A stretch of 64,000 bases of DNA from Penicillus capitatus (Eukaryota; Plantae; Chlorophyta). Shown here piece after piece: positions 3,740-38,443 of the stretch. The position numbers and the translations under genes were made by a program. Where the stretch lies: the NCBI GenBank assembly GCA_965649825.1, contig OZ287700.1, positions 682,001-746,000 of the forward strand, written 5' to 3'. The stretch's first letter is position 1; every line of letters begins with the position of its first letter. The notes beneath the pieces are model-generated. The model saw nothing but the letters and a program-made list of their open reading frames with translations. It was not told where the DNA came from and did not search any database.

Positions 3740-6700
3740 ATGGCGTCCACGTATTCCTCTAAACTTTCCGTTCTCTGTTCGCACAGCAAAGACCAGGATG
3801 CAATACCACAGTCCTCTGTCTTCTCGCCGGCGAGTATCTTTGAACCGCCTTCGCACGTACGCACTCCTTCAAAGGAACATGCGACAAACGCAGCGTCCTT
3901 TAGTTTCCGGCAACGTTACTGAGAAACAACCTCTTGGCGAACCACATTTCGGACGTCCTCGCAACGAAACTCGCAGAACTGGCACCTTCGTCGAGGAAAC
4001 AAACATTCCTGCGCGATATCGGCTATGTCGGCTGTTCGACGGAAAATGTGGCGTACCTCTGCAAAAAAGATTCCCCGGTGCTGCAGCCGTTGGAAATACG
4101 CCTCGAATCCGAAATCACGTTGCTCGAGACGATACGTTATGACTGGACCACGCAAAGCAAAAGGAAGGGTGGCACCACATTTCTGGCCCTCGTTACTGAA
4201 CTTGAGGTGACGTTCTCATACCTGACGTCCCCACACCGACAGCCCTCTCTCCCTGTGTTCAGATGCATTGCTATGAAGCGCGGCCGATCGAGCACGAAGA
4301 GATTGACCTCGTGCCCAGCTTCACCGTCGATGCTCCGTCCGGATCTCTTGTAACGTGCGTGCTCTCGACCAAGACGCGACGTGTGTTCTGCGGGACGAAC
4401 AAAGGTGAGATCTGTGAACTCCGGACAGATGCCAGAGATCGTCGGCCGATGTGGTTGAACATCGGTGACGGCGATGCGTATGCCAGTCCCGTTTCGCTCT
4501 TGCGCCTGGATCAAGGCAAAGGACTCGTTTATGCCTTACACGCCGATTCATCCGTAAACGTCTTCCTCTACCGTTTTGCCACTCCAGGCGAAATGGCGCG
4601 TCATATTGGGGGATTCCGTCCAGATCCAAACAGGCCGATCGCATTTGTCGAGCTGTTTCCGATGCCGAGTGCCGAAGAAGATGCCGCACATCTCCTGGGT
4701 GTTTCGAAAGATGGCGTCCTGTTCAACTTTGAAATGGATCTCCGTTCATTCCGTCAGACGCTATCCTTCGTAAAGAAACTCCTGCGCTCGGCTTCCTCAA
4801 CGTCACAGACGCTGAGTGTGGTCCACGAATCGACCAGCCTCTCCACGCGCCTCTGTTCGGAAGACGAAGAGCGCAGAGTGGCAGCAATTGGCTACTATGA
4901 GGGTCTGATCGTGGCAATGCCTGGTTCGGAAGAAGGCAATCCCACGATCGAGCTCTACTCTGCATCGCGTCTGCCGGCATCTCAAGACAGCAATGATGCA
5001 GAGCCGGCACGCGTGGTCTTCTTTAAGGAACCGATGCGTTTGGATGGCACTTTTGTATCGATGCATCCGGCTTCGGACGATGACAATATGCGTCTCTTTG
5101 AAGGATTGGATCTGGGCAGCGACGAACTGTCGCGACAGGTGTTCCTCAAGGGCAACAAGTTCGTGCTCATGACGGAGAATCGTGTGATCGATGTGCGCAA
5201 GCGCTGCCCCGTTGAGGTGCTGATGGAAATACTGCAAGAGCACGATCCGGAACGCGTGGATGAATTTTTCCGGCTCTATGGTCCAGTGGAGACGGCCACC
5301 ATGTCTGTTCAGTTGGCAGCCGCACGAGGGGATGATCATGCGCGACGGTTGCTTCTGGACGATCATCGCCTGAGTGCCATGTTTTTCTCGACGGAGACGC
5401 ACGGCCCTGATGACCTCTCTATTCCCACACGTGCCATCCTGAGCTACTTTCGAAGATTGGTCCGTCCTGTGTGGGATCGACCTCTCTTCTATGCGAGACA
5501 TGAGGGATGGCGCAAAGACGGCGCGAAAATGACGAGCAGTTTATCGACGTCGTTGCTGGAATGGTTTGCCGGAAGTCTGGAGGAATTGAATAAATTCATC
5601 GAGGTATATGTCGAAGAATTCCGAGCCGTGCGTTTCTTCGACGGCTCCATCTTCGCCCCAAAGTGTCCGAGTATCCTCCGAGAATTCGAGCTTCTCTTCG
5701 ATTTGAAGAATATCATTACAAAGTGCACAGAGATCATGAATCTGGTCAGAATCTACGAGGAAGCTCGACCAGTTGACGTTTCCGATCGCCAAATGAAGAT
5801 ATTCACTAAGAAACCGCTCCAAAGCTTTGTTTTCACAAATGAATCTCCAACGTGTCCAATTCAAGTTCTCATCACGTCGATGCTCGCCGGTAAAGACCCC
5901 GAAGTACAAGAGGCCATTACCTTCAAGATGGACAACGAAATCCCCAATCTCTGCAACACAAAGGACAAGATCTATAAAAAGGCACGCCCTGTGCTTCCCT
6001 TCTCTGCTGCGTGTTATGTGTGACCTCCTAGGCGCTGTCGCTGTTGAAGAAAGCTAAGATCTCTCCGAGGCTCGAGAGACAAGAGATCCTTGTCAGCAAA
6101 GCCATGAACTTGCTCGGAGATAACTGCGAGGAGCGACACATAGATGCCATTATAGCTGCCCTTGCAGATCTGCAGCGACACTATGTACGCGATACCGTCA
6201 GTGGAGAGATCTACGGTGCAATCGTGGTGTGATGCAGGAGGTGCTGCAGTTTGTGTCGAAGACGGCTAAGAAGCTCGTGCCTGAGCCAACCACATCAGAT
6301 GCAGCCGTGCAGAAGAAGGCACAACATTTGCGACGCCGCTGTTACGATCGCGTCTTTCAATACGTGGCAGACTACATCCAGAACATCGACATGGATGACG
6401 ACGCCTCTCTGGACATTCCTGTACTGTACGGTGCGGTTCAGTATCTGGACGACCGTCACATGATGCAGATGATGATGGAGAAACTCCTGGCGTTCAATAA
6501 AGTCCCAAAGCGCCAGTTGCATCAACCTAGCTATACAGAATTCGGCATTGCCCTTAAACAATACATTTCCCAGAAAGTCATGAATGTTTCCAGCCTGCAC
6601 GAAGTAAAGGAACAGATTGGAGTGCCCCTGTCTGCGTCGGCCGAACAGGAAGTACGTTTGCTTGTCGCCATCTGTCAGTCTCAGGAGGAAATGAAACAAG

Positions 6701-7158
6701 CCGGTGACTGGCTGATGCTCTTGGCCAAGAGAGCGTCGAAGCACGGTCGCGAGATTCCTCTCATCGAAAGGATCGGAGATTTGAACGACGCAAAGGCGAT
6801 GTATAAAACGGTGATGCCGGAGAGTTTTATGCGGCAGGTCGAGCGAGAGATTGAACTGGCAATGTTCCAACAGCGCGTGCTGACAATGGGCACGAGGATC
6901 TTCGCTATCATGAACGATGTGCACGACAACGGTCAAGACGTCAGAGACGTCATGACACGATTGGTGGGGGTTGACGTGCTGTACAGAGTGATTCGAGATA
7001 ACTTTCCAGATAAGGTACGATCCACTCTTGCCTCTCAGTGGACGTTTATGGGGCGTTTCTGTCTGTAGACTTCTCAGGATCTAACAGATGAACTGCAGAG
7101 GATTGCGAGAGAAGGTTTTGAAATCGTCTCTGGAGACGATACCTTGACAGAATCATAG
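3740..7158 (+). CDS. NUP155: Divergent nucleoporin Nup155/Nup170-like; multi-exon
   Basis: Propeller-like segment RRVFCGTNKGEICEL, then LSRQVFLKGNKFVLMT..RCPVEVL and FFRLYGPVETATM, which match recalled Nup155 motifs, followed by a helical region. It is shorter than typical Nup155. Confidence 0.65.
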
Positions 7159-8015
7159 AATTTTACCAATCTCCATCTGCCCGGGGCATTTTTGCCGTTT
7201 TCTTCGAAGAACTGATCGCCGTGACGCATCTATGACAAACAACATTCCCCATTCCCTCAGTGGTGTGTACTCTTTTCTGTTACCTACTGTCGCGGGCGCG
7301 CCGGGGCGAGATGCGGCATGATAATATGCCATAGCGTCTTGCCCGCGATAGGGACGATGTTTTCGTAGCACCGGTATCGTCCAAATTTCATCTTTTGTAT
7401 TACATACATCCCACTGCCGTTTGTCTTACTTGCACATATCTTTTGCGCACAACTATTCTTTACACACACGCAAAATGATGGGAAACACTGTCGGGATCGA
7501 GGGAAGCAGACTGGACCTCACTCTATGCGAGTCCGCCGTCTTGACATGGTTCAGGCAGAGAGCGCGGACAATTTTCAACGCATTTGCCTCTGGGATGGCG
7601 GCTTCATATCCAACTCTCTGCCAACATTCAATGCTACTATAACGGACAGCATCCTTTACGCTAATATAACGGACAGAATCCTCTGAGAACGCACTCTTGT
7701 TGTCTGCGGAGTGGCTTTGCTTGTCTTACCAGGATGATCTTTCAAACATCTGAAAGGTGGCCGATCGATGAACAGTCAGTCGTCTCGCTTACACACTATG
7801 ACTGTGTAACCACCTTGTGCATGGAAGATGTACGAACAGAAGACAACGGCCGTCATCTGATGGTCCATCTGTCAGACGCGGGAGACGCTGGCGGGCGGGA
7901 GGGCGGTTTTGGGATGTCGACCGACAACGACGTCGAGCGCCAGATGACGGCGCTCCTGACGGTTGCGCACAAGCCATTTTCGACGTTGCGTTCGCTCTGA
8001 ACACCACCCTTCACC

Positions 8016-8945
8016 ATGCGTTTCTTCTTGCCAGGCGGACTCTTTCTTGTCCTCCTTTTCGCTTTGAAGACTAGGGCTTCTGGCGATGTCGTTAATGCGA
8101 TCGCAGTGGAGGGATATCGCCAAGTGAAAAGCGCCGATGAGTTGTGGCGTTTTCATGCTGGGTCGACGGAAGCAGGGCTGACACTCGGAAGCGATTGCGT
8201 CTGTCTGTTAACGGCGCGAAATCTGTTTCTCGCTGGTCGTGGACAAGGCGTATACAGCCAATACCAATGGTGCAAACGCGATGAGCATTGGGAACTGCTG
8301 CCGATGGGCGGCGACAAATTCGCTCTGAAACATCGCATTATGGATGCCTATATGTCGTGCGCCAACAATGGCGGCGTCGTTCTTCGTGGTCATGCCAAGG
8401 GCGACGAACACTTCAACATCTTCATCAACGAAGAGGAAGACAAGATATCGTTCTACAGTGTTGCCCAGAAAAAATTTGTCCATGCGGATGAACGTGGGAA
8501 GACGTATTGCAATACGGACAAGAACGACAATCCCAATACGATTTTTCGCGGGTGGAAGAAAGGAGATAAGTCCGCGTGGATGCCATCTGAGAAGCACGAG
8601 GTAGCGGCGACTTTTGACAATTCAGCATCGCGAAAAATTAAAAATTTCCCGTTCACCGCGACGCTGGGAGTGAAAACGGACGAGAAAGCCGAGGCAGGCG
8701 TCGTCGTCGACCAGCCGCTTCTCTTAACGAGTGCTCTGAAAGAGAAATTTTTGGACAAGGATTACAAGTCAAAGTTTCAAACAGATTGGTCGAAGCAAGA
8801 CAAGAGCATCTGGGAGGACGCACAGAAAAAGAAGATATCCTGGAGAATGTATCCAGAAGACAAAGTGGAAATCCAGCAGGTCGTTGGCATCTATGGGCCG
8901 TTTAAGATCTACACCGACGAGTTCGTCGAAATTCCAGTGACCTGA
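8016..8945 (+). CDS. Secreted beta-trefoil (fascin/ricin-like) plus aerolysin/ETX-MTX2-like domain protein, paralog 1; intronless
   Basis: Hydrophobic signal peptide; trefoil-like repeats (VCLLTARNLFL, FALKH..AYMSC, ISFYS..KFVHA); C-terminal W..FDN..W..P..IQQVVGIYGPFKIYT pattern; clear paralogy with 9462-10472. Confidence 0.6.
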   Translation: MRFFLPGGLFLVLLFALKTRASGDVVNAIAVEGYRQVKSADELWRFHAGSTEAGLTLGSDCVCLLTARNLFLAGRGQGVYSQYQWCKRDEHWELLPMGGDKFALKHRIMDAYMSCANNGGVVLRGHAKGDEHFNIFINEEEDKISFYSVAQKKFVHADERGKTYCNTDKNDNPNTIFRGWKKGDKSAWMPSEKHEVAATFDNSASRKIKNFPFTATLGVKTDEKAEAGVVVDQPLLLTSALKEKFLDKDYKSKFQTDWSKQDKSIWEDAQKKKISWRMYPEDKVEIQQVVGIYGPFKIYTDEFVEIPVT

Positions 8946-9461
8946 ACGACATGACCTGCAGGGAACAAAGGAACGCAGGCCGCTTAATCGAAAGTGGAAT
9001 GATCGATGGAGAATGGAAAACCAGACGTCCTTTGCTAGCTGCACTTGCTTAAGCGTTGCATTTACCTTTATGTTGTTCATCTCAGACCTCTACCAGTTTT
9101 TATTTCGCCTTCCATATGAACAGCTCCCTATACTGGGTACCTAAGTCAATTGTGATGGGACGTTGTAACAGGATCCCTGATTGATAGTCTCTGAGCACGC
9201 AACGTCGATAACGTCCGACGGTTGCCACCGATGGACGATTCGTTCACAGAGCGATCTGCCGAGATACAGCGCTTGAGCTGCATACCAACTCGGTAAGCGA
9301 TGCCCCACTGCGCCGCGTTTCTCTCTTTAACGATTCTCCGTATAGATTCATCTTCATCGAAGTCGACAGGACACCAAATTTGCCGTAATTGACGTTGACC
9401 CTTCGGTCACCTTAACGAAACGAGTGAGAGCGATGAGTCATCTCCGCAACAGCATTATAAA

Positions 9462-10472
9462 TTGCCAATGGCGTCGTCGTTCTATACAATCCGAACAATG
9501 CAGTGCTCTTTCGCTTTCTTCTGTTTGGCTATCGCTTTTGGAGTTGTCTCTACATACCCGCTCCCTTTTCGCACAACGACCTTCTCTGGCGGCGATACTC
9601 TCCCTGTGGGCAACGAAGACTACACCGACGTTACGAGCAAGAAGCAGCTGTGGCGTTTCGCAGTTGGGAACGGCGATGGATACACTGTGGGAGAACGGTT
9701 CGTCTGCCTGCGTGTGAACAATAGGGCTGGTCGGTTGATCGGTGCTTCCTCAACCACTGTCTATCAAGAATCCAGCTGCCGCGACAACGCGCGATTGGAA
9801 GTGGAGTTTCTGACCGGCAACGAGGTCAAATTGAGGACCAAGCGCGGCAATCGATACATTTCGTGCGCGGATGATGGCAGGGTAAGAGTGACGACTTGGT
9901 CGGACGAGACGTCAATCTTCCAGCTCAGAATCAACAGCGACGAAGATAGTTTAATCCTGTACAATCCTTATTACGATGGCGCACTGTCCGCAGAGGGATA
10001 TACCATCACCTGCAATGGATATCGAGCAGAGACGCTGTCCAAGTTTAGAGGCTGGAAGCTTGGACCGAAGGAAGCCTGGGAAGCATCGGACGAGTGGCAG
10101 ATGATCGGATCCTTCGACAATCGCTATTCAGCGTCTAAGATGAAGTTTACCTATGGCACTGCGATCGGCATCGAGACGACTCTTGCTGGCAAAGCGAGTG
10201 TTTCCGATGGGGTCCGGGTGGAAATCGGGCCGGATATGTTTGAGACGTTCACGAAGAGTATCGCGTCGAAGTCGGATGTGGCGTGGCAAAGCACGCCGCC
10301 GAATGTGTGGCGCCATACGGAGTGGCTGACATCCCACATCGAGGTGGAGCCGAAGCGGATGACGAAGATCTACCAGGCGATTGGACGCTATGGCGTTTTT
10401 ATCATCCGAACGAACTATATGCAAGCGCGCGACGACGATGCGTACGTTTCATTCAGTAACTTGATGGAGTAA
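9462..10472 (+). CDS. Secreted beta-trefoil plus aerolysin/ETX-MTX2-like domain protein, paralog 2; intronless
   Basis: Signal peptide; shares LWRF..G..G.T.G..VCL, Y.SCA..G.V, IN..ED, FRGWK.G.K.AW, FDN and Q..G.YG.F.I.T with paralog 1; has a Ser/Thr-rich alternating beta segment (IETTLAGKASVSDGVRVEIG..ETFTKSIASKS). Confidence 0.6.
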   Translation: MPMASSFYTIRTMQCSFAFFCLAIAFGVVSTYPLPFRTTTFSGGDTLPVGNEDYTDVTSKKQLWRFAVGNGDGYTVGERFVCLRVNNRAGRLIGASSTTVYQESSCRDNARLEVEFLTGNEVKLRTKRGNRYISCADDGRVRVTTWSDETSIFQLRINSDEDSLILYNPYYDGALSAEGYTITCNGYRAETLSKFRGWKLGPKEAWEASDEWQMIGSFDNRYSASKMKFTYGTAIGIETTLAGKASVSDGVRVEIGPDMFETFTKSIASKSDVAWQSTPPNVWRHTEWLTSHIEVEPKRMTKIYQAIGRYGVFIIRTNYMQARDDDAYVSFSNLME

Positions 10473-10581
10473 ACGCAACGGGAGGCATTACCAAAGCGAG
10501 GGAGGGAGGGACCAGTGCTAGCGGGGCAGCCAATGTTGTTCACGTTGTCCGACAATCCCCGAAGTTTAAACGCGCAAATGC

Positions 10582-11973
10582 TTGACGATCTTCTGTGCAC
10601 TCCGAAAAGCGTTCTCGCGATTCCTTGTGAGGTATGCGATGCTGCGCCATCCGTTGTGGTACCCGTCGACTGCCATGAAAAAGCACAGCGATGTTAACCG
10701 TCATCAGATTTCTGCGGACGAGATGACTCCAAAACCCTGTTGGAAATGCGGAAAGCGCACGGACTTCGACGGTCAGGTAGAGGGGATCCGGAGAACGATT
10801 TGTTGCGAATCCTGCTGTTTGTGGTTCACGGAATCCGCCCCTCACCAGTACGCCGGCATACATCGCATGACGGAGAAACGCGCCGTCAACGAATACCACT
10901 GCACGCGCGACGACCTGGACACCATCGCGAACTGCGTCATGCTCCACTATCCGCGCAATAACACGTCCAGACTGTTCCTGGGAGCCGAGATCATCTGCCT
11001 GGCCGAAAGACGGACGAAGGCCAAGTGGAAGAAGCAGCTGAAGAAGAAGTATGCGGATATCCAGAGACGACTGGGCGTGCGACTGAAAAAGCTCGACCCG
11101 ACGATGAGGGCGTTCCTTCTGGACGACTACGCGTGTCGGTGGGGAGACCCTAAGACGACAATGGAGGATATCGAGAAAAGGCTGCGCGTCCTGCACCGCG
11201 TTCAGATTATTCGGAAGAGGTGCGAAAGGGCTCACCCGAAGGCCGTCTTCGACTTCTGCCTGTCCAACCCGGACGCGGAGCCTGAGGAATTCCTCGATCT
11301 CAGATCCAAGGTGAAGAGGGTGATGCGACTGGAGAGCGACCGGATCATGAAGCACCTGACACAGGTTCAGAGGAACGAGCTGATGGATACGCCTCTGAAA
11401 GACTGCGCCGAGCAGTACGCGTCAAGGGACAAGAAGCCGACCATCCGATCTCACCTGCAAGAGATGGGGGTATCGGAGGACGAGGCCAAGGAGATTGTGG
11501 ATCACCCCGCCTGTCAGCTCAGGATCGAGAGGGAGGACAACGAGAAGAGGGCGGCCGGCCTACTGCTGCGATTCTGGAGGGAGAAGGATGACATCTACAA
11601 GAGGGAGCGGAAGTTGATCATCGCCGGTCACCGCGGACTGGGAGGGCCCATGCACCAGTCGTCGACACCGTACCAGATGTATCTCAACGGCGACGTCGAT
11701 GCCGATCTCGAGGAGCTGACGTCGCATATGTACATCGCAAAGGATTGCAACTTCCCTTTCGAGTCCAAGCACCGAGATGAGAGGATCTCCATCGCCTTCG
11801 CCAGATTCGAAGACTGTCTTTACAGACAGAAAATGGAACTCTGTGCCTCGATTGTTGAGGCCGTCACCTACGGACAGAGAGTCCTATTGCCAGATGCGGA
11901 AGACGTCCGGGAGACGTTCGACTACAAGCAATTGGCAAACGGGTTCTGGAGTGACCGATGGGACATGCTGTGA
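10582..11973 (+). CDS. Intronless protein with an XPA-like C4 zinc finger and XPA-C-like DNA-binding module; start codon uncertain
   Basis: 463-codon ORF with CWKC-x17-CESC followed by MTEKRAVNEYHCTRDDLD..SRLFL..EI (XPA C-terminal-like spacing), then a helical region. Confidence 0.5.
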   Translation: MTIFCALRKAFSRFLVRYAMLRHPLWYPSTAMKKHSDVNRHQISADEMTPKPCWKCGKRTDFDGQVEGIRRTICCESCCLWFTESAPHQYAGIHRMTEKRAVNEYHCTRDDLDTIANCVMLHYPRNNTSRLFLGAEIICLAERRTKAKWKKQLKKKYADIQRRLGVRLKKLDPTMRAFLLDDYACRWGDPKTTMEDIEKRLRVLHRVQIIRKRCERAHPKAVFDFCLSNPDAEPEEFLDLRSKVKRVMRLESDRIMKHLTQVQRNELMDTPLKDCAEQYASRDKKPTIRSHLQEMGVSEDEAKEIVDHPACQLRIEREDNEKRAAGLLLRFWREKDDIYKRERKLIIAGHRGLGGPMHQSSTPYQMYLNGDVDADLEELTSHMYIAKDCNFPFESKHRDERISIAFARFEDCLYRQKMELCASIVEAVTYGQRVLLPDAEDVRETFDYKQLANGFWSDRWDML

Positions 11974-12580
11974 CGACGAATGCCGGGAGGCTTCGATCAA
12001 ACGATCTGTCCATCGGGAGGGGAGGTGGCGGCGCAGGCGAACATCGAGCATCGTGTTTGCTGCGGGTTCCGAAGTTGCCAGTTTTATAAAGACCATCCAT
12101 TATCCTTTTCCTTTCGATCATCACGTTTTTATCTTTTCAAGTCTTAGCATGGGGGGTTGACTCGAGATGCCAGCTCTGTAAGGTCTCTGTTCACATTGGA
12201 TCTGTGTTCGCTCTGCTGCGCCCTCGATCGCGCTTGACCTTCCTCGATGCTCCCTTCCTAGCCTGAGACACACACCTTCGCATCCAGTGGAGATATCACT
12301 CAGAACTCACTGCGACTCCCCTCTCGGATCTTGCCTCTCTCCTTGGAGGTGCCATGGGCGCCTTCAGGTATCAGGATCTGTCGACAGTCGAACGAAGCGG
12401 CCAGTGTACCTCTGCTAGATGTGATCGCCGCTCCCGATCTTCCGCCTCTCGCATGTAGATCGATTGAAGCTCTTTTCGTTCCAGTTCGATGAAATCGATT
12501 AGCTGGATGATGACCGCATGCTTATCGTACATTGTCATTTTCACTGCGCCTTTGCGTCTGTTGGGTTCAGGCATTCTTCC

Positions 12581-14306
12581 ATGGAACCGTCGCGAAATGC
12601 GTTCAGGTGTCGAAAACGGAAGGCAGAGGACACGCCAGGGGCTTCCGACGCGTCTGCGTTAAGCCCTTTAGGTGATGCTCTCAAGAACGAGGACATCTTG
12701 CTTAAGGTTCTCGGATATGTCGGGAATGATGATATTCGCGAATGTCGACGCGTCTGTCGTCGGTGGTATGAAGTTTGTGGACAAGTTCCATTCGCAAACC
12801 GCAACGACATAGACCTATGGCAACTCAGCAAACTGATAGAGAAGTTTCCCAATGTCACAGACGTGTCTCTCAAAGAATGTTCAGACAAAATCGATTTCCT
12901 GGACACACTCTTGACATTTTTGCCAAAGCTGAAAAGACTACGCACTCTAAGGCTATCACTGCATAAAGGACACCGAGTCCCAGAGGGTTTGTGCCCGATT
13001 CTTGTGTCCATGGATAGCCTACAGTCACTGTCACTCAACTTGCACGACGAGAGTGCCTTTATTGCTTGGATTGAAATCTTGAGACACTTGCCGGAACTCC
13101 TCTCTCTGAAGCTCTCATTTAGCGGTACTGTCAATACCGACCTGGGTATCGTCTCAGAGCTTCACAGACTTCGAGACTTGACATGCAATTTCCGTGTCTT
13201 CGTCAAAAGAGACGGGCGGCTTCTCTTCCCATCACTCAACCAACTCACGCGACTCAAGATCTGCTGTTCATATTCCCAGAGCAGACAAGTGCATGTCATG
13301 AACTTAAGAGTGAGCATCCGTCAGGCATACATCTTCCGTTTGAATCGCTTTTGTGCTTCTGCAGACTTTGGAACCCTTTGCCGCTTCTCTGCAGGTGTTG
13401 GATTTTGCAGGATTTACTAGACGCCGCTTGATTCAAGGGTTCTCGGCACTGCTGGCCTTTTCGCAATTGAAGACTCTTAGAATCGCGAACTCTAGTCTTA
13501 AAAACACCGACTTCTTTCTCATCCTTCCAAGATTAGATCATCTGACAGAACTGAAGTTCTGGGGATGTCACCTCGCATCCCCTTGTATCTCCCTGGATTC
13601 TATTAAGGCCCTCACTGGACTCAAGTCGCTTTGTCTCGACGTCCCGAAGACGTCAGTGGCCGCATATGAGACGACGGCTGCTTTTTCTGCTTTGTTGCGA
13701 TTGACATCCCTTACATTGAGCATTCACGGCATCTTGGGAAGATATTTGTATTGCCTGACGGCATTGGTCGATCTGACAATCAAGAGCAGTACTGCGTTGC
13801 CGCCGTACCTAGCAGATGCGATATGGTGCATGCAACATCTGACGTCTATACGACTCGGTGATCGGGAAGGAAAGTTCCAACTGCCGTCAGCTGCTTTGGA
13901 ACCGCTGAAAGAGCTCAAAGTAATAAAGTTCAAAAATGTACTGATTGCACCAGATTTCTTGGAAACCCTGGCAACGCTGCCCTGCATGACAGAATTGGAT
14001 TTCTATGTGCCCATTAGTTCCTTAGATCAATTTCAGTTTTATCCTCAACTAGGTCTTCTCTCAAACCTCGTTGTTTTGCGTATCCCTGCTGATCATACGA
14101 CGGTAGAGATTTTCGTTCATCGACTGGTTGGTCGTCTACCAAAGCTTCGAGAACTCGCACTCTATACTTGGCCGGATGCTACTTTGCGGGGCCTTACCTT
14201 CACTGAAGGTCGGCGGACACGAGAGCTAGAACCTGTATTACTAAATAGGTTCCCAAACCTTCGCCGGGTTTCCCAAATCTTTTTTGGAGCATATTGGATT
14301 ATATAA
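12581..14306 (+). CDS. F-box plus leucine-rich-repeat protein; one intron near 13310-13370
   Basis: F-box EDILLKVLGYVGNDDIRECRRVCRRW followed by many LxxLxxLxL repeats in two ORFs joined by gtgagc..ttctgcag. Confidence 0.85.
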
Positions 14307-29735: not shown

Positions 29736-30268
29736 CCTGTCTTTTCGCCAGTGACTGTGGGGCTGTTTTCTATATTTTCTTGTTTCGTTAGTGTGTTTGG
29801 CATATTCTGGCAGTCACGAGAAACTTCAATCCGACTGTATGCCTAGTTTTGATCTTTGTGCGCTGTTTAAGGAGGTGAGGTGGTTTGTAGCGTGTGTTAT
29901 TTGCTGTGAGGTGGGCAGATTTTTATTTGCTAACAGTTCTTTGTGGTGGTAGCTTGCGAGACATTTTTGTTGTCATGCATATCGGATTTTGTCTTTTCAA
30001 CGACCTTTGAAGATGTGGTTTTGCCGAGGGATGTAGCTTTCGAAACGGCCATGGCAGCAATCTTCAGTTGCGGCGGCGGGGCGGCAGATGAGCTATCTTT
30101 AAGACAGATGAATGACCTGCTCAACCGCTTTTCGCAGCTAAAGACGAACAAGAGTCATGCGTGTGTCTGAAAGTGGATTGGAGCATAGAGCAGTGGTCGG
30201 CTGGGAGTGTAAGATGATGTGGAGAGGTGGTTGTTGGGTCGGATCGGTCTGGAGCAGTAAACAAGGAG

Positions 30269-30782
30269 GTGCTGGATGGATGCGGTGGACCTGGACCTGT
30301 GCTGGATGGATGCGGTGGACCTGTGCTGGATGGATGCGGTGGACCTGTGCTGGATGGATGCGGTGGACCTGTGCTGGATGGATGCGGTGGACCTGTGCTG
30401 GATGGATGCGGTGGACCTGTGCTGGATGGATGGATGCGGTGGACCTGTGCTGGATGGATGGATGCGGTGGACCTGTGCTGGATGGATGGATGCGGTGGAC
30501 CTGTGCTGGATGGATGGATGCGGTGGACCTGTGCTGGATGGATGGATGCGGTGGACCTGTGCTGGATGGATGGATGCGGTGGACCTGTGCTGGATGGATG
30601 GATGCGGTGGACCTGTGCTGGATGGATGGATGCGGTGGACCTGTGCTGGATGGATGGATGCGGTGGACCTGTGCTGGATGGATGGATGCGGTGGACCTGT
30701 GCTGGATGGATGGATGCGGTGGACCTGTGCTGGATGGATGGATGCGGTGGACCTGTGCTGGATGGATGGATGCGGTGGACCT
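30269..30782 (+). repeat. Two-block minisatellite: 6 x 24 bp (GTGCTGGATGGATGCGGTGGACCT) then 13 x 28 bp (one extra GGAT)
   Basis: Read directly; a 6-bp GGACCT duplication follows the first unit. The overlapping repetitive ORFs in the track are by-products of this repeat. Confidence 0.97.
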
Positions 30783-33546
30783 GTGGTGTTTGAGGAGCTA
30801 AGAGTGCGAGAAATTTACTCTTCTCTGGGAGGGGTTAGGACGAGTGATGTGGGATTTGTTCTGGTGCAGTGGATTGGGAGGAGTACAGTGTTCTGTCGTG
30901 TGGCTCGGTGAATGACATGCCGAATCCGTTTTTTGAGCAGAATCTGATGAGGTGTCCTTACTGCAAGGTGGTGGATACAACGATGGCTTGCTTTATCTGG
31001 AAAAAGAAAATTATAAACAAGATTTGCTTTACAAGACATGCTGGATGCAAACGATAGTTTGCTGCAACAGATGAATGTGGTGAGAATGGGCAAAACAGCC
31101 GTTATGTGGAACATCAAAGTACAGTAACGCCCTCTTATGATCATCAACATCTCACGTTTATCATCAGGTATAAGAGGGGATTGGATTATATTTATGCACT
31201 CCGGCGAGATGATATCCGGAAAAGAATGATTGGCAATCCAACGTCACCATCCGACACGGTACCGAGATTTTATTAGACACATCACAGGACACTGAGAGCA
31301 AATGCCATTCCAGAAATGAGACAAGGCTGAAGACATCTCTGCTGAAGAGGAAGGACACGGTATCATCTTGATACACAAGAGATCTGCGTCGATAATCCAG
31401 TCTGCAAAGCTTGCGACATCTCACATTATGTCCCCTGCCGTCAGCGAATCTAAGGTTCCCAAAGACTATCTTTCATTTTGATATGTCATGCTAAGTGTGC
31501 TCTGTTCTGCAGAAAGACCAATTGTCTAAGAACGTCGAGAAGAGCTTCCAAGGCAGACAGCAGCATCCTTCCTGCTCGAGCTCAGTTGAATCCGATGTGA
31601 CGTCGACATTGGATCGCAGTATCAGTTTCTGCGAATGGAGTTCTTTCCCGACAAAGGATCTCTTCGATGAGCATGTCAGCGCACCGAATCCTGTACTCGG
31701 CAACACAATTCTCAAGGTTAGGCTAAGGATGTCTCATGCTCCTCTCCTGCATTATCGATTTGACAGGGATTTCAAGAATACGATGTCGAAGAAGTGGCAG
31801 CAGTGGCCTGGCTGCATGATAGAGAGTGCTGGGTCGAGAGAAGATACCTTGGATCGAGTCCTTTCTACAAAAATCGACGCGTTCGTCCTCCTACGAAGAG
31901 ATGGATTCACCAACAGCGGCATTCATCTCGACGACTCTATGCGTGATTGATGGATACATGAAAGCGAAAATCCTGGATCTTGCGACATCATGGCGCCGTG
32001 AGTGCTCTGGAGTCTGGACTGGTGATAAGGAGCAGAAGACTTAGAAGACAGATGACAACTGACAATGCCATTCTGATTTGAAGAGAGAAAGAGAGACCTG
32101 ACCTGCATCGCCTGGATTCACGCATCATCAGACAACAATGATGATACACCGAAAGGCCGTTGGTCGCATGCCAAAAGACTGGATGCATCAGGAAGCAGAC
32201 TGGAGCGTATCCTTTGCCAGCAGTTATCAGGATGCCCTGGATCTGTTTCCGGGGCATGGGAACTCTGAACTCTGGAGATTCGCGCAAATGGACAAGCAAA
32301 ACAGTTTGACTGCAAGATCGTGAGAAAGGAAAGAGCTTCACTGCCGGAACAATGAATTCTTATCCGAAATGAGGATCAGTTTAGTAGTAGTCCAGAGGCT
32401 CCATGGGATCAAGAGACTTGCCCGACCTGGACGAAGATTGACTGTTTCCTTCCAGGTATGTTCGCTGTCACTTATGCACCGAGGTAGCCTGTATCTTACA
32501 GAATCAACATGGAACTGAAGAGGACCGACCACAGTATGGACACTCGATGACGGCAAACAAGATCTCAAATATATCACTGTCACCTACCTTTGGTGCGTCC
32601 TTGAAAAGGGACAATTTCCCTCCAACGAAGATGAAAAGGTAAAAACTCAACAAGAGATGACACCAATCTAAGCTGACAGTGAAGGACGTGCTGGTACAGA
32701 AACAAAAGAAGACATGGTTCCGATGAGAGGGACATCGAGAGAATTCCCGCAGCCAGTTCGCCAGGTCAGAGTCCAGCTGTTGCAGACTAAGCCTAGATGA
32801 TGATTGCATCGTAGTTGTGTAGAAACAGATGTGGATGTACTCCATCACTCTCCTCCAGAGCGCCACTATCCGATTAGGCAGAGGAGTGTGTCTGGGAATG
32901 TGGACAGGCCGGATATCTGAGTTCAGCATGGATGTGGCTTATCGATCCGAAGACTTGGTAGACATTGCTGATGCATCCTCAGATCACATGTCAAGACTCC
33001 ACGAGGATTGGAAGAGCGACAACCGCCCTTCCATAGGGAAGGAGATGGGTTGATGGTCTCTTGTCTGACTATAGCATAGATGAGAAACCACTTGACAACA
33101 TGATCGCTTCACTGACAAGCTTTATCAGGTAGAGAATGCCAAATCTGCCCTTGTGCTCCACGACACAGTGCCATTAGGCAGAGATGAGGAAGAAGAGACA
33201 AAGGGGGAAGACGTCTATCCCTCAGAGACTTCCTGTGGAAATGGCACCTTCACGATTCTAAACGAACTGTGGATTGGATGACTGACAAACTTCGAAGAAA
33301 ACAGCCATTACCGCGAAGGGATTTCCATACAGAATGGAACCATCAGAAACTGGAGACAGAAAGAAGTGGATGCTTCTGAGAGGGCACATCACAGCGCTCA
33401 CGGTCGAGAGGACCAACGATAGATGGCCTTGCAACATCGTCGGTACAGAATTGGAAGAGGCCATCCGTTCATGCAAAGTGGACTCAGAGTCTGGATCAAC
33501 CAGAACACGACTCTATGTTTATGTGGCAGGATTTACTAAAGGACAG

Positions 33547-33764
33547 TGTGAACTCCTCATGGTACGGAACCATGATGTCACATTGGTGACGAGGGATCGG
33601 GAAGATGACGGTCCGATGCGACAGACAGAACTGATGGGATGCTGCGATCGAAAGCATTAAATAGAGACTCATGATGAGTTGTGTGGAAGAAACGTTTTGG
33701 TTTTTTAAAAATATTTGCTACGCAGCACCCATGGCCGACGCGAAGCGCGTTCGTCCCAATGACA
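33547..33764 (+). repeat. 5' LTR (218 bp)
   Basis: TGTGAAC..AATGACA, identical by eye to 38226-38443. Confidence 0.95.
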
Positions 33765-35284
33765 TGGTTTCGGAGCGAGGTTCTCGAACGAGAACCTGGC
33801 TTGTTTACTCGGAGTATACTCGAGACATTCACGAGTGGTTGTTTGAATCGCTGGAAATCACTACGGCGGTAGGACGTGAACGAGACCGAGCGTTGTTGGA
33901 CAGCCTCGAACCCCAGTCGGCAGCCTCGAAACTTGTTTTGCCTCAGCTAAAAGCCGTCCGACGCCTGGACGAAAAGGCATGTCGCGAAGAGCTTGGAGGT
34001 GAAACGGCGTCCGAAGAAACCGCAGTAGACGATCTTCGTTGGCAAGTATTGAATAAACGTTTGGCAGCGCTGTTGCCGAAAGATGACCTCGTGGCGCCCG
34101 AGGACCAGCTCCGTAGCATGAAACGTGATGTAGCGAAGGAAAACTTACTCGTCTACGTGGACCGTTTCGTTCGGGAAGCCCGGTCCTTTGTCGCCCAGCA
34201 AAAGGTGTCGATGGAGAAGGCCGTCCGGATCCTTTATCATCAAATGCCTGAAGAGATACGTCGGGCATTGATCCACACCGGAAAAGCCGGACTGAGTTTG
34301 ATACAAATAGAGACGCTGGTGCGAAACAAGCTCGAGGTGCTGGCCATGACGGACGCTGGAGAATACTCATATCGACAACTGGTCGAATACCTCGATGAAG
34401 CTACTTGTCGACAAAAGGCTAGTGGCAAACCGGAGACCGCCAGATTGGAACTTCCACTTGTGGGTGGAGAAACATCGCAGCCATCAAGCGGGCAACACCG
34501 ACGGTTGGACATCAATAACCCGAACCATGTGATGATCGCATGGAAACGTTTGATGCGGGTGCCCCGTTTTCGACGAGAAGCGCAGAAATATCTCGCCTCG
34601 AACTCCTTTGACGCGAGGCCGGCCACCCAACTCAGGGCTTTACAAACCGAAACCGAAGATGTTGACGATCCTTTGGAGCTTGAACTGACCGAAGAAGACG
34701 GGGATGTTCTTTCGAAACCAGGGCTGTATACCATGTACAAGGGTTACCCTCTGGTCTGCTCTCGAATTTCCCCGGTGGAAAAGGCTAGCATGAACGTGCC
34801 GACCTGCATCGAAGGGACCAAGATCAGTGGTTTGGTGGATACTGGCGCCACTGCATGTTTCATTCAAGAGGCTACTGTGAAAGCATTGGGAATCCAGCAG
34901 AGAGTAACACAGTGTGGAAACCTATACGTTTCGCTGGGAAATGGAAGTGCCTCTCCAATTCTGGGACGCATAAACATCGAAGCCCGTATAGATGACCATC
35001 CATATGAGATGGAAGCGTTTGTGATTGGAGGCAAAGGCCCGCCGCTCATCCTGGGATTCCCTTTCTTCGCTACAAATCAACTTCTCATTGATTGCCAAGA
35101 AAAGAGAATCTGGCGCAGAAATGGTGAAGAAATAACATGCACGCAGGCACAGCTAAAGGTCCTTAACCAAACTGATGTGACCCATCTCCTCGAAGAAATG
35201 CAAAGACTCCAAACTGAGCTCGATGAGCTAAAAGGGCAAAAAAACATCCAAGGAGCATCACTGAATCCAGCCCAGTGGTGTTAA
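33671..35284 (+). CDS. Retrotransposon ORF1: Gag plus aspartic protease
   Basis: Capsid-like LRSMKRD..LLVYVDRF; protease ISGLVDTGATACFI..LGNGS..LILGFPF; no CCHC knuckle seen. The true start may be ATG 33731 or 33764. Confidence 0.9.
   Translation: MMSCVEETFWFFKNICYAAPMADAKRVRPNDMVSERGSRTRTWLVYSEYTRDIHEWLFESLEITTAVGRERDRALLDSLEPQSAASKLVLPQLKAVRRLDEKACREELGGETASEETAVDDLRWQVLNKRLAALLPKDDLVAPEDQLRSMKRDVAKENLLVYVDRFVREARSFVAQQKVSMEKAVRILYHQMPEEIRRALIHTGKAGLSLIQIETLVRNKLEVLAMTDAGEYSYRQLVEYLDEATCRQKASGKPETARLELPLVGGETSQPSSGQHRRLDINNPNHVMIAWKRLMRVPRFRREAQKYLASNSFDARPATQLRALQTETEDVDDPLELELTEEDGDVLSKPGLYTMYKGYPLVCSRISPVEKASMNVPTCIEGTKISGLVDTGATACFIQEATVKALGIQQRVTQCGNLYVSLGNGSASPILGRINIEARIDDHPYEMEAFVIGGKGPPLILGFPFFATNQLLIDCQEKRIWRRNGEEITCTQAQLKVLNQTDVTHLLEEMQRLQTELDELKGQKNIQGASLNPAQWC
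33765..33782 (+). promoter_or_regulatory. Primer-binding site, tRNA-iMet-like
   Basis: TGGTTTCGGAGCGAGGTT directly follows the LTR and matches the plant iMet PBS (TGGTATCAGAGCCAGGTT, recalled) at 15 of 18 positions. Confidence 0.7.
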
Positions 35285-35300
35285 GCTTTGAGTTGCTGGA
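35239..35300 (+). promoter_or_regulatory. Predicted -1 programmed ribosomal frameshift signal (slippery heptamer plus H-type pseudoknot)
   Basis: A_AAA_AAC at 35239-35245 in correct phase; 8-nt spacer; stem 1 is 35254-35263 with 35273-35282; stem 2 is 35266-35271 with 35295-35300. Confidence 0.8.
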
Positions 35301-38022
35301 GACCCCTCTATACCTTCCATTTCTGAGAAACTGCTATCTGGTACTCCCTTTCAACAGATCGTGGGTGCTGGGTCCAGGGGAATGCCGAAAGCTCATCCTT
35401 CCCGTTAAGTTTGTCAAGGGAAGTTTAGGGTCCATCACGGACGCGCTGACTTGCCCAGGAGTCAGGTTTTCTCCACAGAGCAATGGATGTAGGGTATGGG
35501 GAATGCTAGAGAATCGAGGTCGGATGCCACAACATTTGACGCCTAGGATGCCACTGTGCATCATCCAAACCAATGTGACGCATGTACTGGTTCCAGACAG
35601 AGGGCAAATTCCGTTGACAGAAAGAGGAATTCCGTTGCCGCTGAGAAGCATTGTTGCGTATGGAGAAGATTTGCAGAATATATTGCGAGAATTCCACGAC
35701 TTAACCAGTGGCAATCTTGGGAAATGTGTCGATCATGTGGTGACAGATATCCCATTTCAGCATCGCCTGACAAGACAACAATCATCGCCCTCCATATCAC
35801 CCAGCGAAGAGTCGTTAGTTCTAGAAGAAATCAACAAGTTAGTAGAGTTGGGGGTGGTCAGGGAGACGTCCCAAGAGCCATATTTGATCCCGGCGTTCTG
35901 TATTCCGAAAAAAACTGGAGATGTGCGATTGGTGCTCGATTTTCGAAAGCTGAACTCGTGCGTAGAAGCGCAGCCCTTCCTGGCAGTGAATAGAGAGCAT
36001 ACGATCGCTGGGGTGCGCCCGTATGTGGTCGGGTCAGCAATCGATTTGCAAAACGCGTATTTCCAAGTAGAGCTGGCTCCCAAGCTGCATCATTGCTTTG
36101 GAGTGTGTTTGCGACGGAAATTCTACGTCTACGAACGACTCCCCTTCGGATACGTCAATTCACCTAGTGAATTCCTAAGAGCATTGAGACCTGCGATTGC
36201 AGAAATGGATGAAGCAGTGCAGAGCCAAGTGGTGGTTTACATGGATGATATTCTTTTGCTCTCGCAATCAGTACCAGAACATCTCCGAGATCTACGCCAA
36301 GTACTCCAGATTCTGGAAAAACGGGGATGGCGAATGCGACCGGATAAGTGCTCCTTCATGCAAGAGGTATTTGACTTCTTGGGACACGTTGTGACTCCAA
36401 CAGGTTGGCGTGCAAGTGCCTCAGCGATAGCACGCCTTCAGAAGCTACAGCCTCCCAGAACGCAAACAGAATGGAGAGCGATCAAGGGCTGGTTCCAGCA
36501 ACTTGTTCGATTCGTGGTGAACGGCAGAGTGGTTCAAGGTGCGCTACGGAAGGCGGAAGAATCGGGAAGGGTGGAGGATTGGCAGACATTTCTGAGTGGA
36601 TTGGAACAACACACAGTGGCATGTACACACGCAAAAGAAACAGCGGACTTTGGCATCGCAGTGGACTCGTCGGGAAGTGGCTGGGGTGCAGTGCTATTGC
36701 AACAAAAGCAAATAATTTGCTGTGCTTCTGGTTTGTGGCCGCAAGCATTGAAGCATCAGATTTCGAATCACTTGGAAATGGAGGCAGTGGTCAAAGCCCT
36801 TCGCAAGTTTCAACCATGGATCTTTGGAGGAAGAGTGACGGTGTTCAGTGACAACGCTTCGGTGGCCAGCCTCGCAAATGCAGACAATCGAAGTCCCTTC
36901 ATCCGACGACGGCTGGACCAAATCCAGGAGTGTTGCCCACGGTTGCGTTTCTTGCCGGGGCACTCCAATGTGCTGCCAGATCTTCTCTCGAGGCAGAGCG
37001 AGCTATTTCCGGATTCGTCAAGTGGTATAACGGCCTCCACAATGAGAGAGAGGCCATCGGATTTGGCCGGAGCTCACGCGGGGCACTTCGGAGCGGAAAA
37101 GACCTGGGAGATTGCCAAAGAACTAGGATTAGCAGTTACACGGGAGGAAGTCAAAGCCTATTGTCGTCAGTGTCGTGTGTGTCAACAATTTCAACCAAAG
37201 GTCAGGACCGTGCCGTTGGGACGGCTGCCCGAACCCCTCCGTGCTGGAGAACTCATTTCTATTGACTTCGTTGGCCCCCTACGGGCTGCCCGTACGGGGG
37301 TACGTTATGTCTTTACAATGGTCGATCATTTGACAAGGCTGGGAGCGGCTATGGCGTTCAAGCGATCCACGACGGCTTCAGCTCAGAAAGGGCTGGAATG
37401 GTGGTTTCGAGAGAATGGAGCCCCTAAGCGAATTCTGTCAGATCGAGCAAGCTATTTTAGCTCGCCGACCTTCAGCGCGTGGACAGAGGAATGGGGCGCT
37501 CAGAGTATACTGACTGCTCCGCATGCCCATCATTCGAACGGACTTAACGAACGATGGAATCAGACGTTGGTCAATCGTTTGCGCAGAATGTTGCTCGATC
37601 ACCCTGGAAAGACGTGGATCGACGTGCTGCCATTGGCAGTCGACTGCACAAACCAGGCGCCGCACAGCATTACCGGATTCGCTCCTTGGTACCTATGGTC
37701 GGGCATCACTATCGGAGGTCGGCAGGCTACACTTGAAGAGGTGACGAGAGACAGACAGATTGCCGCTTGGAGGACCAAAGAAGCTCGAGACAAAGAACTC
37801 GGGGTTTCTGGACGAATGGAACCGTTTCAGCCATCCATCGGAGAGGAAGTATGGGTCTTCGATGCCGTGAGGATGGAAAGGCTCGACGACAAACTGAGTC
37901 CCTTCTGGGTTGGGCCCTTTGTGATCGTCGAACAGTGTTCACCGCATATTTGCCGATTGAGACGTATTGGGTCAAGTCAGAAGATCATTTGCCATGTGGA
38001 CAATTTGAGGCCTTATGTATGA
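35239..38022 (+). CDS. Retrotransposon Pol in the -1 frame: dUTPase-like relic, RT, RNase H, integrase
   Basis: RT motifs PKKTGDVRLVLDFRKLN, LPFGYVNSP and YMDD; RNase H VDSSG..EMEAV..SDNAS; integrase H-H-C-C finger, IDFVGP..LSDRAS..GLNERWN and GPF motif; no chromodomain. Confidence 0.95.
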   Translation, partial: KKHPRSITESSPVVLSFELLETPLYLPFLRNCYLVLPFNRSWVLGPGECRKLILPVKFVKGSLGSITDALTCPGVRFSPQSNGCRVWGMLENRGRMPQHLTPRMPLCIIQTNVTHVLVPDRGQIPLTERGIPLPLRSIVAYGEDLQNILREFHDLTSGNLGKCVDHVVTDIPFQHRLTRQQSSPSISPSEESLVLEEINKLVELGVVRETSQEPYLIPAFCIPKKTGDVRLVLDFRKLNSCVEAQPFLAVNREHTIAGVRPYVVGSAIDLQNAYFQVELAPKLHHCFGVCLRRKFYVYERLPFGYVNSPSEFLRALRPAIAEMDEAVQSQVVVYMDDILLLSQSVPEHLRDLRQVLQILEKRGWRMRPDKCSFMQEVFDFLGHVVTPTGWRASASAIARLQKLQPPRTQTEWRAIKGWFQQLVRFVVNGRVVQGALRKAEESGRVEDWQTFLSGLEQHTVACTHAKETADFGIAVDSSGSGWGAVLLQQKQIICCASGLWPQALKHQISNHLEMEAVVKALRKFQPWIFGGRVTVFSDNASVASLANADNRSPFIRRRLDQIQECCPRLRFLPGHSNVLPDLLSRQSELFPDSSSGITASTMRERPSDLAGAHAGHFGAEKTWEIAKELGLAVTREEVKAYCRQCRVCQQFQPKVRTVPLGRLPEPLRAGELISIDFVGPLRAARTGVRYVFTMVDHLTRLGAAMAFKRSTTASAQKGLEWWFRENGAPKRILSDRASYFSSPTFSAWTEEWGAQSILTAPHAHHSNGLNERWNQTLVNRLRRMLLDHPGKTWIDVLPLAVDCTNQAPHSITGFAPWYLWSGITIGGRQATLEEVTRDRQIAAWRTKEARDKELGVSGRMEPFQPSIGEEVWVFDAVRMERLDDKLSPFWVGPFVIVEQCSPHICRLRRIGSSQKIICHVDNLRPYV

Positions 38023-38225
38023 CACTCTATCGGGAGAGGGTCATCAAAGAGTGAAGCGCTCAGACTGTCTTCCGTTGGTACATCACTGGGTAGAGATCCC
38101 GGGCCCTTGAGGGCTGGCTAATGTGATACGCCTATCGAATCTTCAAGCTGTTGACCACTGCAACGAGCTAAGGAGCTCAGAGTGGAACGGAGATCCCTTC
38201 GGAGTTTTGATCGCGCAGAGAAGCG

Positions 38226-38443
38226 TGTGAACTCCTCATGGTACGGAACCATGATGTCACATTGGTGACGAGGGATCGGGAAGATGACGGTCCGATGCGA
38301 CAGACAGAACTGATGGGATGCTGCGATCGAAAGCATTAAATAGAGACTCATGATGAGTTGTGTGGAAGAAACGTTTTGGTTTTTTAAAAATATTTGCTAC
38401 GCAGCACCCATGGCCGACGCGAAGCGCGTTCGTCCCAATGACA
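38226..38443 (+). repeat. 3' LTR (218 bp)
   Basis: Identical to the 5' LTR; preceded by a short purine-rich stretch (CAGAGAAGCG) as a weak polypurine-tract candidate. Confidence 0.95.

Follow-up and report, generated by a model that had tools for sequence, protein, structure and literature searches.

A tandem pair of genes for predicted secreted proteins with a beta-trefoil and an aerolysin-like module in a bryopsidalean green alga

The gene pair and its conservation

The 64-kb stretch of Penicillus capitatus contig OZ287700.1 that runs from position 682,001 to 746,000 (hereafter the window, with all coordinates counted from its first nucleotide) contains two adjacent genes, g1 and g2, whose products are predicted to combine a signal peptide, an N-terminal fascin-type beta-trefoil and a C-terminal module of the aerolysin type. 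Both genes lie on the plus strand and are complete and intronless. g1 (8016-8945) starts at an ATG and encodes 309 amino acids, and g2 (9498-10472) starts at a conserved ATG, encodes 324 amino acids and has the same architecture as g1. An intergenic spacer of 552 nt (8946-9497) separates the two and is kept, together with the whole locus, in a sister species (locus L001). A first-pass annotation of this DNA had described two adjacent same-strand paralogs, in the open reading frames (ORFs) at 8016-8945 and 9462-10472, and BLASTP agrees, with 27% identity at E 7e-29 over nearly the full length of the proteins, both domains included. A third family copy was not found in the 64-kb window.

The lengths first given for the two products were 309 and 336 amino acids, of which the former stands and the latter is an artefact of ORF counting, because the TTG at 9462 that opens the listed ORF (9462-10472, plus strand) was used as the start and the conserved ATG is at 9498. 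The methionine at 9498 is invariant in an alignment of six sequences, the orthologous gene calls agree on it, and the start is shared by P0001 and P0002. Another ATG in the window, at 9468, has no counterpart in the sister species, where a stop codon stands just upstream of the conserved methionine. On this comparison, the true start of g2 is most likely the ATG at 9498.

Alignment of six family members also supports the cysteine and tryptophan landmarks and the C-terminal motif pointed out in the first pass. Residues C80, C104, C133 and C182, together with W62, W196, W204, W273 and W281, are invariant, as are Q303, G306, Y308, G309, F311 and I313 of the C-terminal Q..G.YG.F.I motif, which in g1 reads QQVVGIYGPFKIYT. 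The intronless state of both genes is likewise confirmed, as the reading frames are uninterrupted and collinear with those of the orthologs and with a short, transcript-sized contig (L002) bearing a complete relative. The latter, a 1.2-kb JGI contig encoding P0003, is transcript-like, with short flanks resembling untranslated regions, and in its terminal part (L002:1100-1228) the pentamer TGTAA occurs about 25 nt before the 3' end. TGTAA is the usual chlorophyte polyadenylation signal.

The sister-species contig, from ENA (1.68 Mb, locus L001), is syntenic with the window over 10.7 kb at 85.6% nucleotide identity, and carries intact orthologs of g1 (P0006, 69% identical) and g2 (P0002, 74% identical) with order and strand unchanged. 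The ratio of nonsynonymous to synonymous substitution rates (dN/dS) between the two species is 0.39 for g1 and 0.33 for g2, and among the neighbours it is 0.13 and 0.08 for two housekeeping genes and 0.52 for an F-box gene. Values that exceed those of the housekeeping genes and lie well below 1 indicate purifying selection, yet a faster evolution than that of the housekeeping neighbours. Faster evolution of this kind is common in secreted proteins that interact with other organisms. Conservation and a dN/dS below 1 rule out a chance ORF or a pseudogene; judged from these sequence comparisons, g1 and g2 are functional genes. A third sister-species member of the family, P0016 (215 amino acids, its N-terminus possibly truncated), is encoded on a separate 815-kb contig (L007:4001-4648).

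A second ENA contig, of metagenomic origin and 1.17 Mb long, includes a 6.9-kb stretch that is 99.35% identical to window positions 5016-11946, from which it differs at 44 positions and by one indel. This divergence is of the same order as the heterozygosity of about 1.29% reported for diploid Ostreobium quekettii, and the contig may represent the other haplotype or a close strain.

The assignment to a green alga made in the first pass is upheld by the closest relatives of the genes. The sole named relatives of g1 and g2 are one Caulerpa lentillifera protein in EukProt and two proteins of Bryopsis sp. KO-2023, and the Bryopsis and Caulerpa entries are labelled as hypothetical proteins or carry a gene-model name alone. 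The neighbouring NAGLU gene is closest to that of O. quekettii (56% identity) and then to that of Botryococcus braunii (49%). The GC content of the window, about 51%, is close to the 52.4% of O. quekettii (bioRxiv 10.1101/2020.07.21.211367). On these affinities the DNA is Ostreobium-like within the Bryopsidales without being that of O. quekettii. A dinoflagellate origin was considered as well and is ruled out, as the spliced-leader sequence of dinoflagellates was not found in the window and the gene affinities are green-algal.

Domain architecture of the encoded proteins

Both proteins begin with a predicted signal peptide, comprising residues 1-21 in g1 (MRFFLPGGLFLVLLFALKTRA, followed by Ser; 8016-8078, plus strand) and residues 1-18 in g2 (MQCSFAFFCLAIAFGVVS, followed by Thr; 9498-9551, plus strand), with the cleavage sites read from the sequence. 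Mean Kyte-Doolittle hydropathy over 10 residues is 3.0 in the g1 segment and 2.8 in that of g2, and does not exceed 1.6 elsewhere in either protein. The residues at -3 and -1 are small (TRA before S in g1, VVS before T in g2), the hydrophobic segments are kept in the g1 ortholog and in P0002, and a hydrophobic N-terminus is common to most relatives. In a 334-residue AlphaFold2 model of g2 the predicted local distance difference test (pLDDT) score stays under 50 over the first 49 residues. The earlier claim of signal peptides on both proteins therefore holds for them as predicted features, and g1 and g2 would presumably be secreted.

Structure models were made for g2, whose alignment with g1 served to assign the domains of the latter. 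Six aligned sequences went into the AlphaFold2 model of g2, which has a mean pLDDT of 80.6 and values of about 90 across both domains. The first domain, approximately residues 40-182 of g2 (9615-10043, plus strand), includes the four invariant cysteines and corresponds to approximately residues 30-176 of g1 (8103-8543, plus strand). Foldseek matches it to FGF and to designed (Symfoil) trefoils with target-normalised template-modelling scores (TM-scores) of 0.7-0.84. A profile of 26 N-domains matches fascin at E 1e-25, a score partly due to the distant fascin-like relatives placed in the profile, as well as hisactophilin, FRG1, FGF2 and two bacterial fascin-like modules of the CBM92 type (7ZOI at E 9e-13, 7ZOH at E 1.5e-11). 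Searched directly, g2 matches Pfam Fascin only at E 0.12, and its relatives match Pfam Fascin, DUF7910, FRG1, DUF569 and FGF. The N-domain profile has no match with ricin-type lectins, and instead of the (QxW)3 repeat of the ricin-B type there is a single conserved QLW at the start of the domain. Nor is the N-domain of the jacalin-like or DM9 kind found in Natterin- and Dln1-type proteins; it is a trefoil, and the match to Dln1 arises via the C-domain alone.

Model and profile thus identify the N-domain as a beta-trefoil of the fascin type, not of the ricin-B type. The trefoil-like domain proposed in the first pass is confirmed; its description as lectin-like is not, as the trefoil resembles those of fascin, FRG1 and FGF, and the WExF motif is missing from g2 and vestigial at best in g1. 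CBM92 modules bind beta-glucans by way of a WExF motif at the end of each subdomain (PMC11039641). In the columns aligned to this motif, A-R/T-S stands in g2, and a shifted HWEL in subdomain alpha is all that g1 retains. Four distant relatives (P0039, P0044, P0046 and P0078) retain WE[KT]F.

The second domain comprises residues 183-324 of g2 (10044-10469, plus strand) and the homologous residues 177-309 of g1 (8544-8942, plus strand), the latter matching the hidden Markov model of the C-domain at E 1e-58 (P0005). Modelled on its own, the g2 C-domain reached a pLDDT of 90.2 and a predicted TM-score of 0.81. Foldseek against the PDB returned lysenin first (E 6e-4, probability 1.0, query-normalised TM-score 0.51), followed by monalysin, the Bombina aerolysin-like protein, Dln1, lamprey immune protein (LIP), Tpp80Aa1 and Cry78Aa, with further matches to the aerolysin prepore, CPE, ETX, BinAB, parasporin-2 and LSL. 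The outcome of this AlphaFold and Foldseek check, which had been set beforehand as a way of refuting the proposed architecture, is that the best matches belong almost exclusively to the aerolysin family. The full-length g2 model has Cry78Aa, Tpp80Aa1 and LSL as its best matches, all of them built as a trefoil followed by a pore-forming module, and the C-domain profile concurs, so that the trefoil plus aerolysin-type architecture suggested in the first pass is borne out. That profile, comprising 46 C-domains and searched against all PDB sequences, matches lysenin (E 0.0034) and LSL (E 0.0058), then Cry78Aa, Tpp80Aa1, Dln1, Sarol-1, monalysin, Vip4Da1 and parasporin-2, together with two unrelated weak matches.

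Homology to the toxin superfamily was also reached through intermediate sequences. When 1.84 billion representative proteins were searched with a profile of six close sequences, 134 relatives emerged; most of them match in the C-domain alone and have different N-terminal modules (VOMI, chitin-binding, FGF-like). In a Pfam scan of 86 relatives, ETX_MTX2 was matched by 12, Toxin_10 by two and Aerolysin by one. P0054 and P0058 score above the gathering threshold of ETX_MTX2 (37 bits against a cut-off of 22 for P0054), and do so over the residues that match the C-domain of the g1/g2 type. P0054, which passes ETX_MTX2, is itself matched by the six-sequence profile at E 8e-8, and this gives a transitive homology link to the toxin family. 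Given the model and the profiles, it is near certain that the C-domain is an aerolysin-type module, in fold and by superfamily homology.

Bacteria, fungi, animals, land plants and red algae are all known to have aerolysin-type pore-formers joined to domains that bind sugars or surfaces. Lysenin of the earthworm (PDB 3ZX7, 3ZXD and 5EC5), the best match of the C-domain both by fold and by profile, also joins a compact pore-forming module to a beta-trefoil. Its domain order is opposite to that of g1 and g2, with the pore module N-terminal and the trefoil C-terminal. Sequence identity to lysenin is about 11%, and g1 and g2 show no sign of its sphingomyelin specificity. The domain order of g1 and g2 is that of LSL from Laetiporus sulphureus (PDB 1W3A), in which an N-terminal beta-trefoil precedes a C-terminal aerolysin-like module; LSL matches the full-length model at E 4e-7 and the C-domain model alone at E 0.73. 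Its trefoil is a lectin of the ricin-B type, unlike the fascin-type trefoil of g1 and g2, which is without the (QxW)3 repeat. Sarol-1 has the same order of trefoil and aerolysin-like module. So do Tpp80Aa1 (8BAD), Cry78Aa (7Y78) and BinAB (5FOY), the top full-length matches at E 3e-7. These Toxin_10, Tpp and Cry78 proteins are bacterial crystal proteins, their whole-chain TM-scores against the g2 model are about 0.3, and Pfam Toxin_10 has no match in g1 or g2 and matches two distant relatives weakly (5e-4). The ETX/MTX2 model (PF03318) is passed or nearly reached, over the homologous region, by twelve more distant relatives, P0054 and P0058 among them; g1 and g2 stay below its threshold, as do all bryopsidalean members tested.

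Among eukaryotes, the fungal protein ARMOST_17075 of Armillaria combines a fascin-like N-domain with an aerolysin-like C-domain (PMC13433851), a likeness to g1 and g2 that is one of domain annotation alone. Within Viridiplantae, the amaranthin-aerolysin proteins (AAT type, such as wheat Hfr-2) consist of beta-trefoil and aerolysin-like domains and are suspected of a role in defence (PMC5554364, PMC3110756); a survey that covered six green algae reported none in them (PMC5554364). Their N-domains are of the amaranthin type and usually doubled, whereas g1 and g2 match neither Pfam Agglutinin nor Pfam Aerolysin. The Bryopsis genome preprint lists F-type and H-type lectins alone, and the words toxin and pore are absent from it (bioRxiv 10.1101/2023.11.22.568388). 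In the literature searched, no earlier account was found of aerolysin-like or pore-forming proteins from green algae, Bryopsis, Caulerpa and Ostreobium included.

The putative insertion segment and mode of action

Between strands 2 and 3 of the C-domain lies a segment of about 40 residues that is a putative membrane-insertion (pre-stem) segment. In g2 it extends from G224 to W263 (GIETTLAGKASVSDGVRVEIGPDMFETFTKSIASKSDVAW; 10167-10286, plus strand) and in g1 from G218 to W258 (8667-8789, plus strand), where 15 of its 41 residues are charged; the bounding Gly and Trp are invariant in the family. The segment aligns with the Ser/Thr-rich alternating stems of relatives, in which the alternating pattern is clear, and in the C-domain profile that of g2 falls inside the stretch aligned to lysenin residues 25-127. 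The AlphaFold2 model of the C-domain shows it as a loop and an amphipathic helix. The g2 segment has an SDG turn flanked on either side by alternating hydrophobic and polar residues, and its beta hydrophobic moment reaches 2.0. Because the g2 stem alternates and the g1 stem is charged and alternates weakly, pore formation appears plausible for g2 and less certain for g1.

The proposed mode of action is that of a surface-binding pore-former. Soluble monomers of g1 and g2 would leave the cell through the secretory pathway, and the trefoil would dock each monomer on a surface ligand of a foreign cell. Docked monomers would then oligomerise, and the segment of about 40 residues between strands 2 and 3 of the C-domain would refold as a beta-hairpin and become part of a transmembrane beta-barrel. 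Defence against grazers, microbes or competitors would be the likely use. Taken as a whole chain, from secretion through trefoil-mediated surface binding and oligomerisation to insertion of the barrel, this account is probable, though not strongly so.

Several observations weigh against it. The trefoil is without the WExF motif by which fascin-like CBM92 modules are known to bind sugars. In the second arm of the g2 stem, which is modelled as an amphipathic helix, the score for such a helix exceeds that for a strand, and in g1, where 37% of the segment is charged, hydrophobic and polar positions alternate weakly. PDB sequence searches with g1 and g2 gave no matches, and in Pfam neither protein matches ETX_MTX2 (PF03318), Aerolysin (PF01117) or Toxin_10 (PF05431) at E <=1. 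None of 10 members of the bryopsidalean clade passes a Pfam toxin threshold, the best value being that of the Caulerpa protein P0009 for ETX_MTX2 (E 0.24). The E-values of the C-domain profile against PDB sequences are all marginal (0.003-0.03 and beyond), and the best TM-score is about 0.5. Moreover, some proteins of the aerolysin fold form no pores, and one of them, HA70, is also among the Foldseek matches.

Some of these observations would be accounted for if g1 and g2 had kept the aerolysin fold as non-lytic binding or aggregating proteins, perhaps extracellular or wound-plug adhesins acting beside the Bryopsis lectins, with the C-domain as an oligomerisation scaffold. The highly charged, weakly amphipathic stem segment of g1 and the presence of HA70 among the structural matches are in keeping with such a role, as is the use of secreted lectins by Bryopsidales to aggregate extruded cytoplasm (bioRxiv 10.1101/2023.11.22.568388). 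However, the Gly- and Trp-bounded segment is conserved, many relatives have the classic Ser/Thr-rich alternating stem, and the stem of g2 does alternate. In addition, the known aggregation lectins of Bryopsis are of the F-type and H-type, which are unrelated folds. A non-lytic function is thus considered unlikely, and pore formation is preferred.

Family history, locus context and biological meaning

In a neighbour-joining tree g2 groups with P0003, P0004 and P0007, beside a group that includes the Caulerpa protein, and g1 groups with P0008 and P0013. The g2 clade and the pair of g1 orthologs each have a bootstrap value of 100, but support is weak at deeper nodes. The placement of g1 and g2 in separate subclades indicates that their duplication is old. 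They are, as far as the tree tells, old paralogs within a small, unannotated bryopsidalean family. Single family genes occur at L004, L005 and L007. A further syntenic locus, L009, comes from a more distant relative (Logan SRR33785045, GC 43%). There, a nucleoporin-like gene, a g1-type gene (P0008, L009:4001-4978) and a 463-aa ORF follow one another, with flanks extending over L009:278-6552 and no g2-type gene at the locus; g2 either moved in later or was lost in L009, as the gene orders would allow. At L008 a second same-strand tandem pair (L008:17-1075 and L008:4001-5077), 56% identical and with classic Ser/Thr-rich stems, appears to be a younger duplication. It adjoins a split nitrate reductase gene on a contig of 22x coverage from the same ENA sample as the near-identical copy of the window. 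The L008 pair and the g1/g2 pair together suggest that tandem duplication is habitual in this family.

This history bears on whether g1 and g2 act together, as a binary pore-former of the BinA/BinB kind in which one protein targets and the other inserts, or in which the two form mixed rings. Paralogous BinA and BinB are a precedent for two-component action, and the full-length model finds its best structural matches in the Bin-like Tpp and Cry78 toxins. The two genes are in tandem on the same strand, 552 nt apart, in an arrangement that is kept in the sister species, and as deeply diverged paralogs (27% identity) they differ in stem chemistry. Against this, the syntenic L009 locus has the g1-type gene alone, the loci L004, L005 and L007 are single-gene, the L008 pair is simply a younger duplication, and proteins of the aerolysin type normally oligomerise alone. 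A binary system is therefore judged improbable, and the first-pass designation of the pair as a toxin system is not sustained, as L009 illustrates.

The lack of introns in what was described as an intron-rich neighbourhood had raised horizontal transfer or retroposition in the first pass. That description was overstated, since the introns of neighbouring genes measure about 50 nt and number about one per kb, with exons of up to 1.7 kb. As the neighbours have few and short introns, and the 463-aa ORF is itself uninterrupted, the intronless state of two genes of about 1 kb is unremarkable. GC content, GC content at third codon positions (GC3) and codon usage of g1 and g2 are within the range of the neighbouring genes. 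Relatives were not found in a scan of 185,579 prokaryote genomes in GTDB that was limited to two patterns, and limited pattern scans of JGI metagenome contigs yielded no confirmed relatives; the broad C-domain alignment is too diverse for building search patterns. Recent acquisition of the pair by transfer or retroposition is accordingly very improbable: although both genes are intronless, g2 is missing from the syntenic L009 locus and may have moved in, and aerolysin-like genes have passed between kingdoms in the past (PMC3424411), the two genes are host-like in composition, belong to separate old subclades in which proteins of Caulerpa and Bryopsis are also found, have no relative in the two-pattern prokaryote scan, and are unexceptional locally in being intronless. 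An ancient transfer into the ancestor of the family may be envisaged by analogy with other eukaryotic aerolysin-like genes, for which transfer between kingdoms has been proposed (PMC3424411).

Directly downstream of g2, an uninterrupted ORF of 463 amino acids (10582-11973) has an unusually high GC3 (0.76) and no Pfam match. It is conserved in L001 and L009, and a long antisense ORF (10540-11355) overlaps it. The F-box/LRR (leucine-rich repeat) gene at 12518-13420, mentioned above for its dN/dS of 0.52, is 61% identical at the amino acid level to that of the sister species, evolves faster than g1 and g2 and has atypical codon usage. A 28-nt minisatellite of 18.8 copies with 97% matches (consensus TGGATGGATGCGGTGGACCTGTGCTGGA) occupies 30273-30785, and the ORFs at 30157-30911 that overlap it are probably spurious. 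At 33546-38443 lies a Ty3/gypsy-type retrotransposon with two identical long terminal repeats (LTRs) of 219 nt (33546-33764 and 38225-38443), a gag-aspartyl protease ORF (33671-35284) and an ORF for reverse transcriptase, RNaseH and integrase (35275-38022). The identity of the LTRs and the open reading frames suggest a recent insertion. Near the end of the window (56819-58776 and 61139-62227) are the alpha-N-acetylglucosaminidase gene, split by very short introns or frame changes, and a fragment of a PhoX-type alkaline phosphatase on the minus strand. Scans of the window for tRNA genes and Rfam families were empty.

Existing knowledge of how aerolysin-like proteins work is left unchanged by g1 and g2. 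They belong to a new sequence family that is invisible to Pfam, and with them a known kind of protein gains a new lineage of hosts. Recognition of the family improves the annotation of bryopsidalean genomes. It is conceivable, though a long shot, that g1 with its charged stem and g2 with its amphipathic stem form a two-component pore-former, co-assembling or with one of them targeting, that is released when the coenocyte is wounded and acts against microbes or grazers while the wound is being plugged. If true, Chlorophyta would have in such a wound-released g1-g2 pair their first described pore-forming defence system. Each bryopsidalean alga is a single giant cell able to survive wounding, and Ostreobium lives within coral skeletons, closely surrounded by microbes and animals. 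For such organisms, a secreted family of predicted pore-forming proteins provides a concrete candidate for chemical-free defence.

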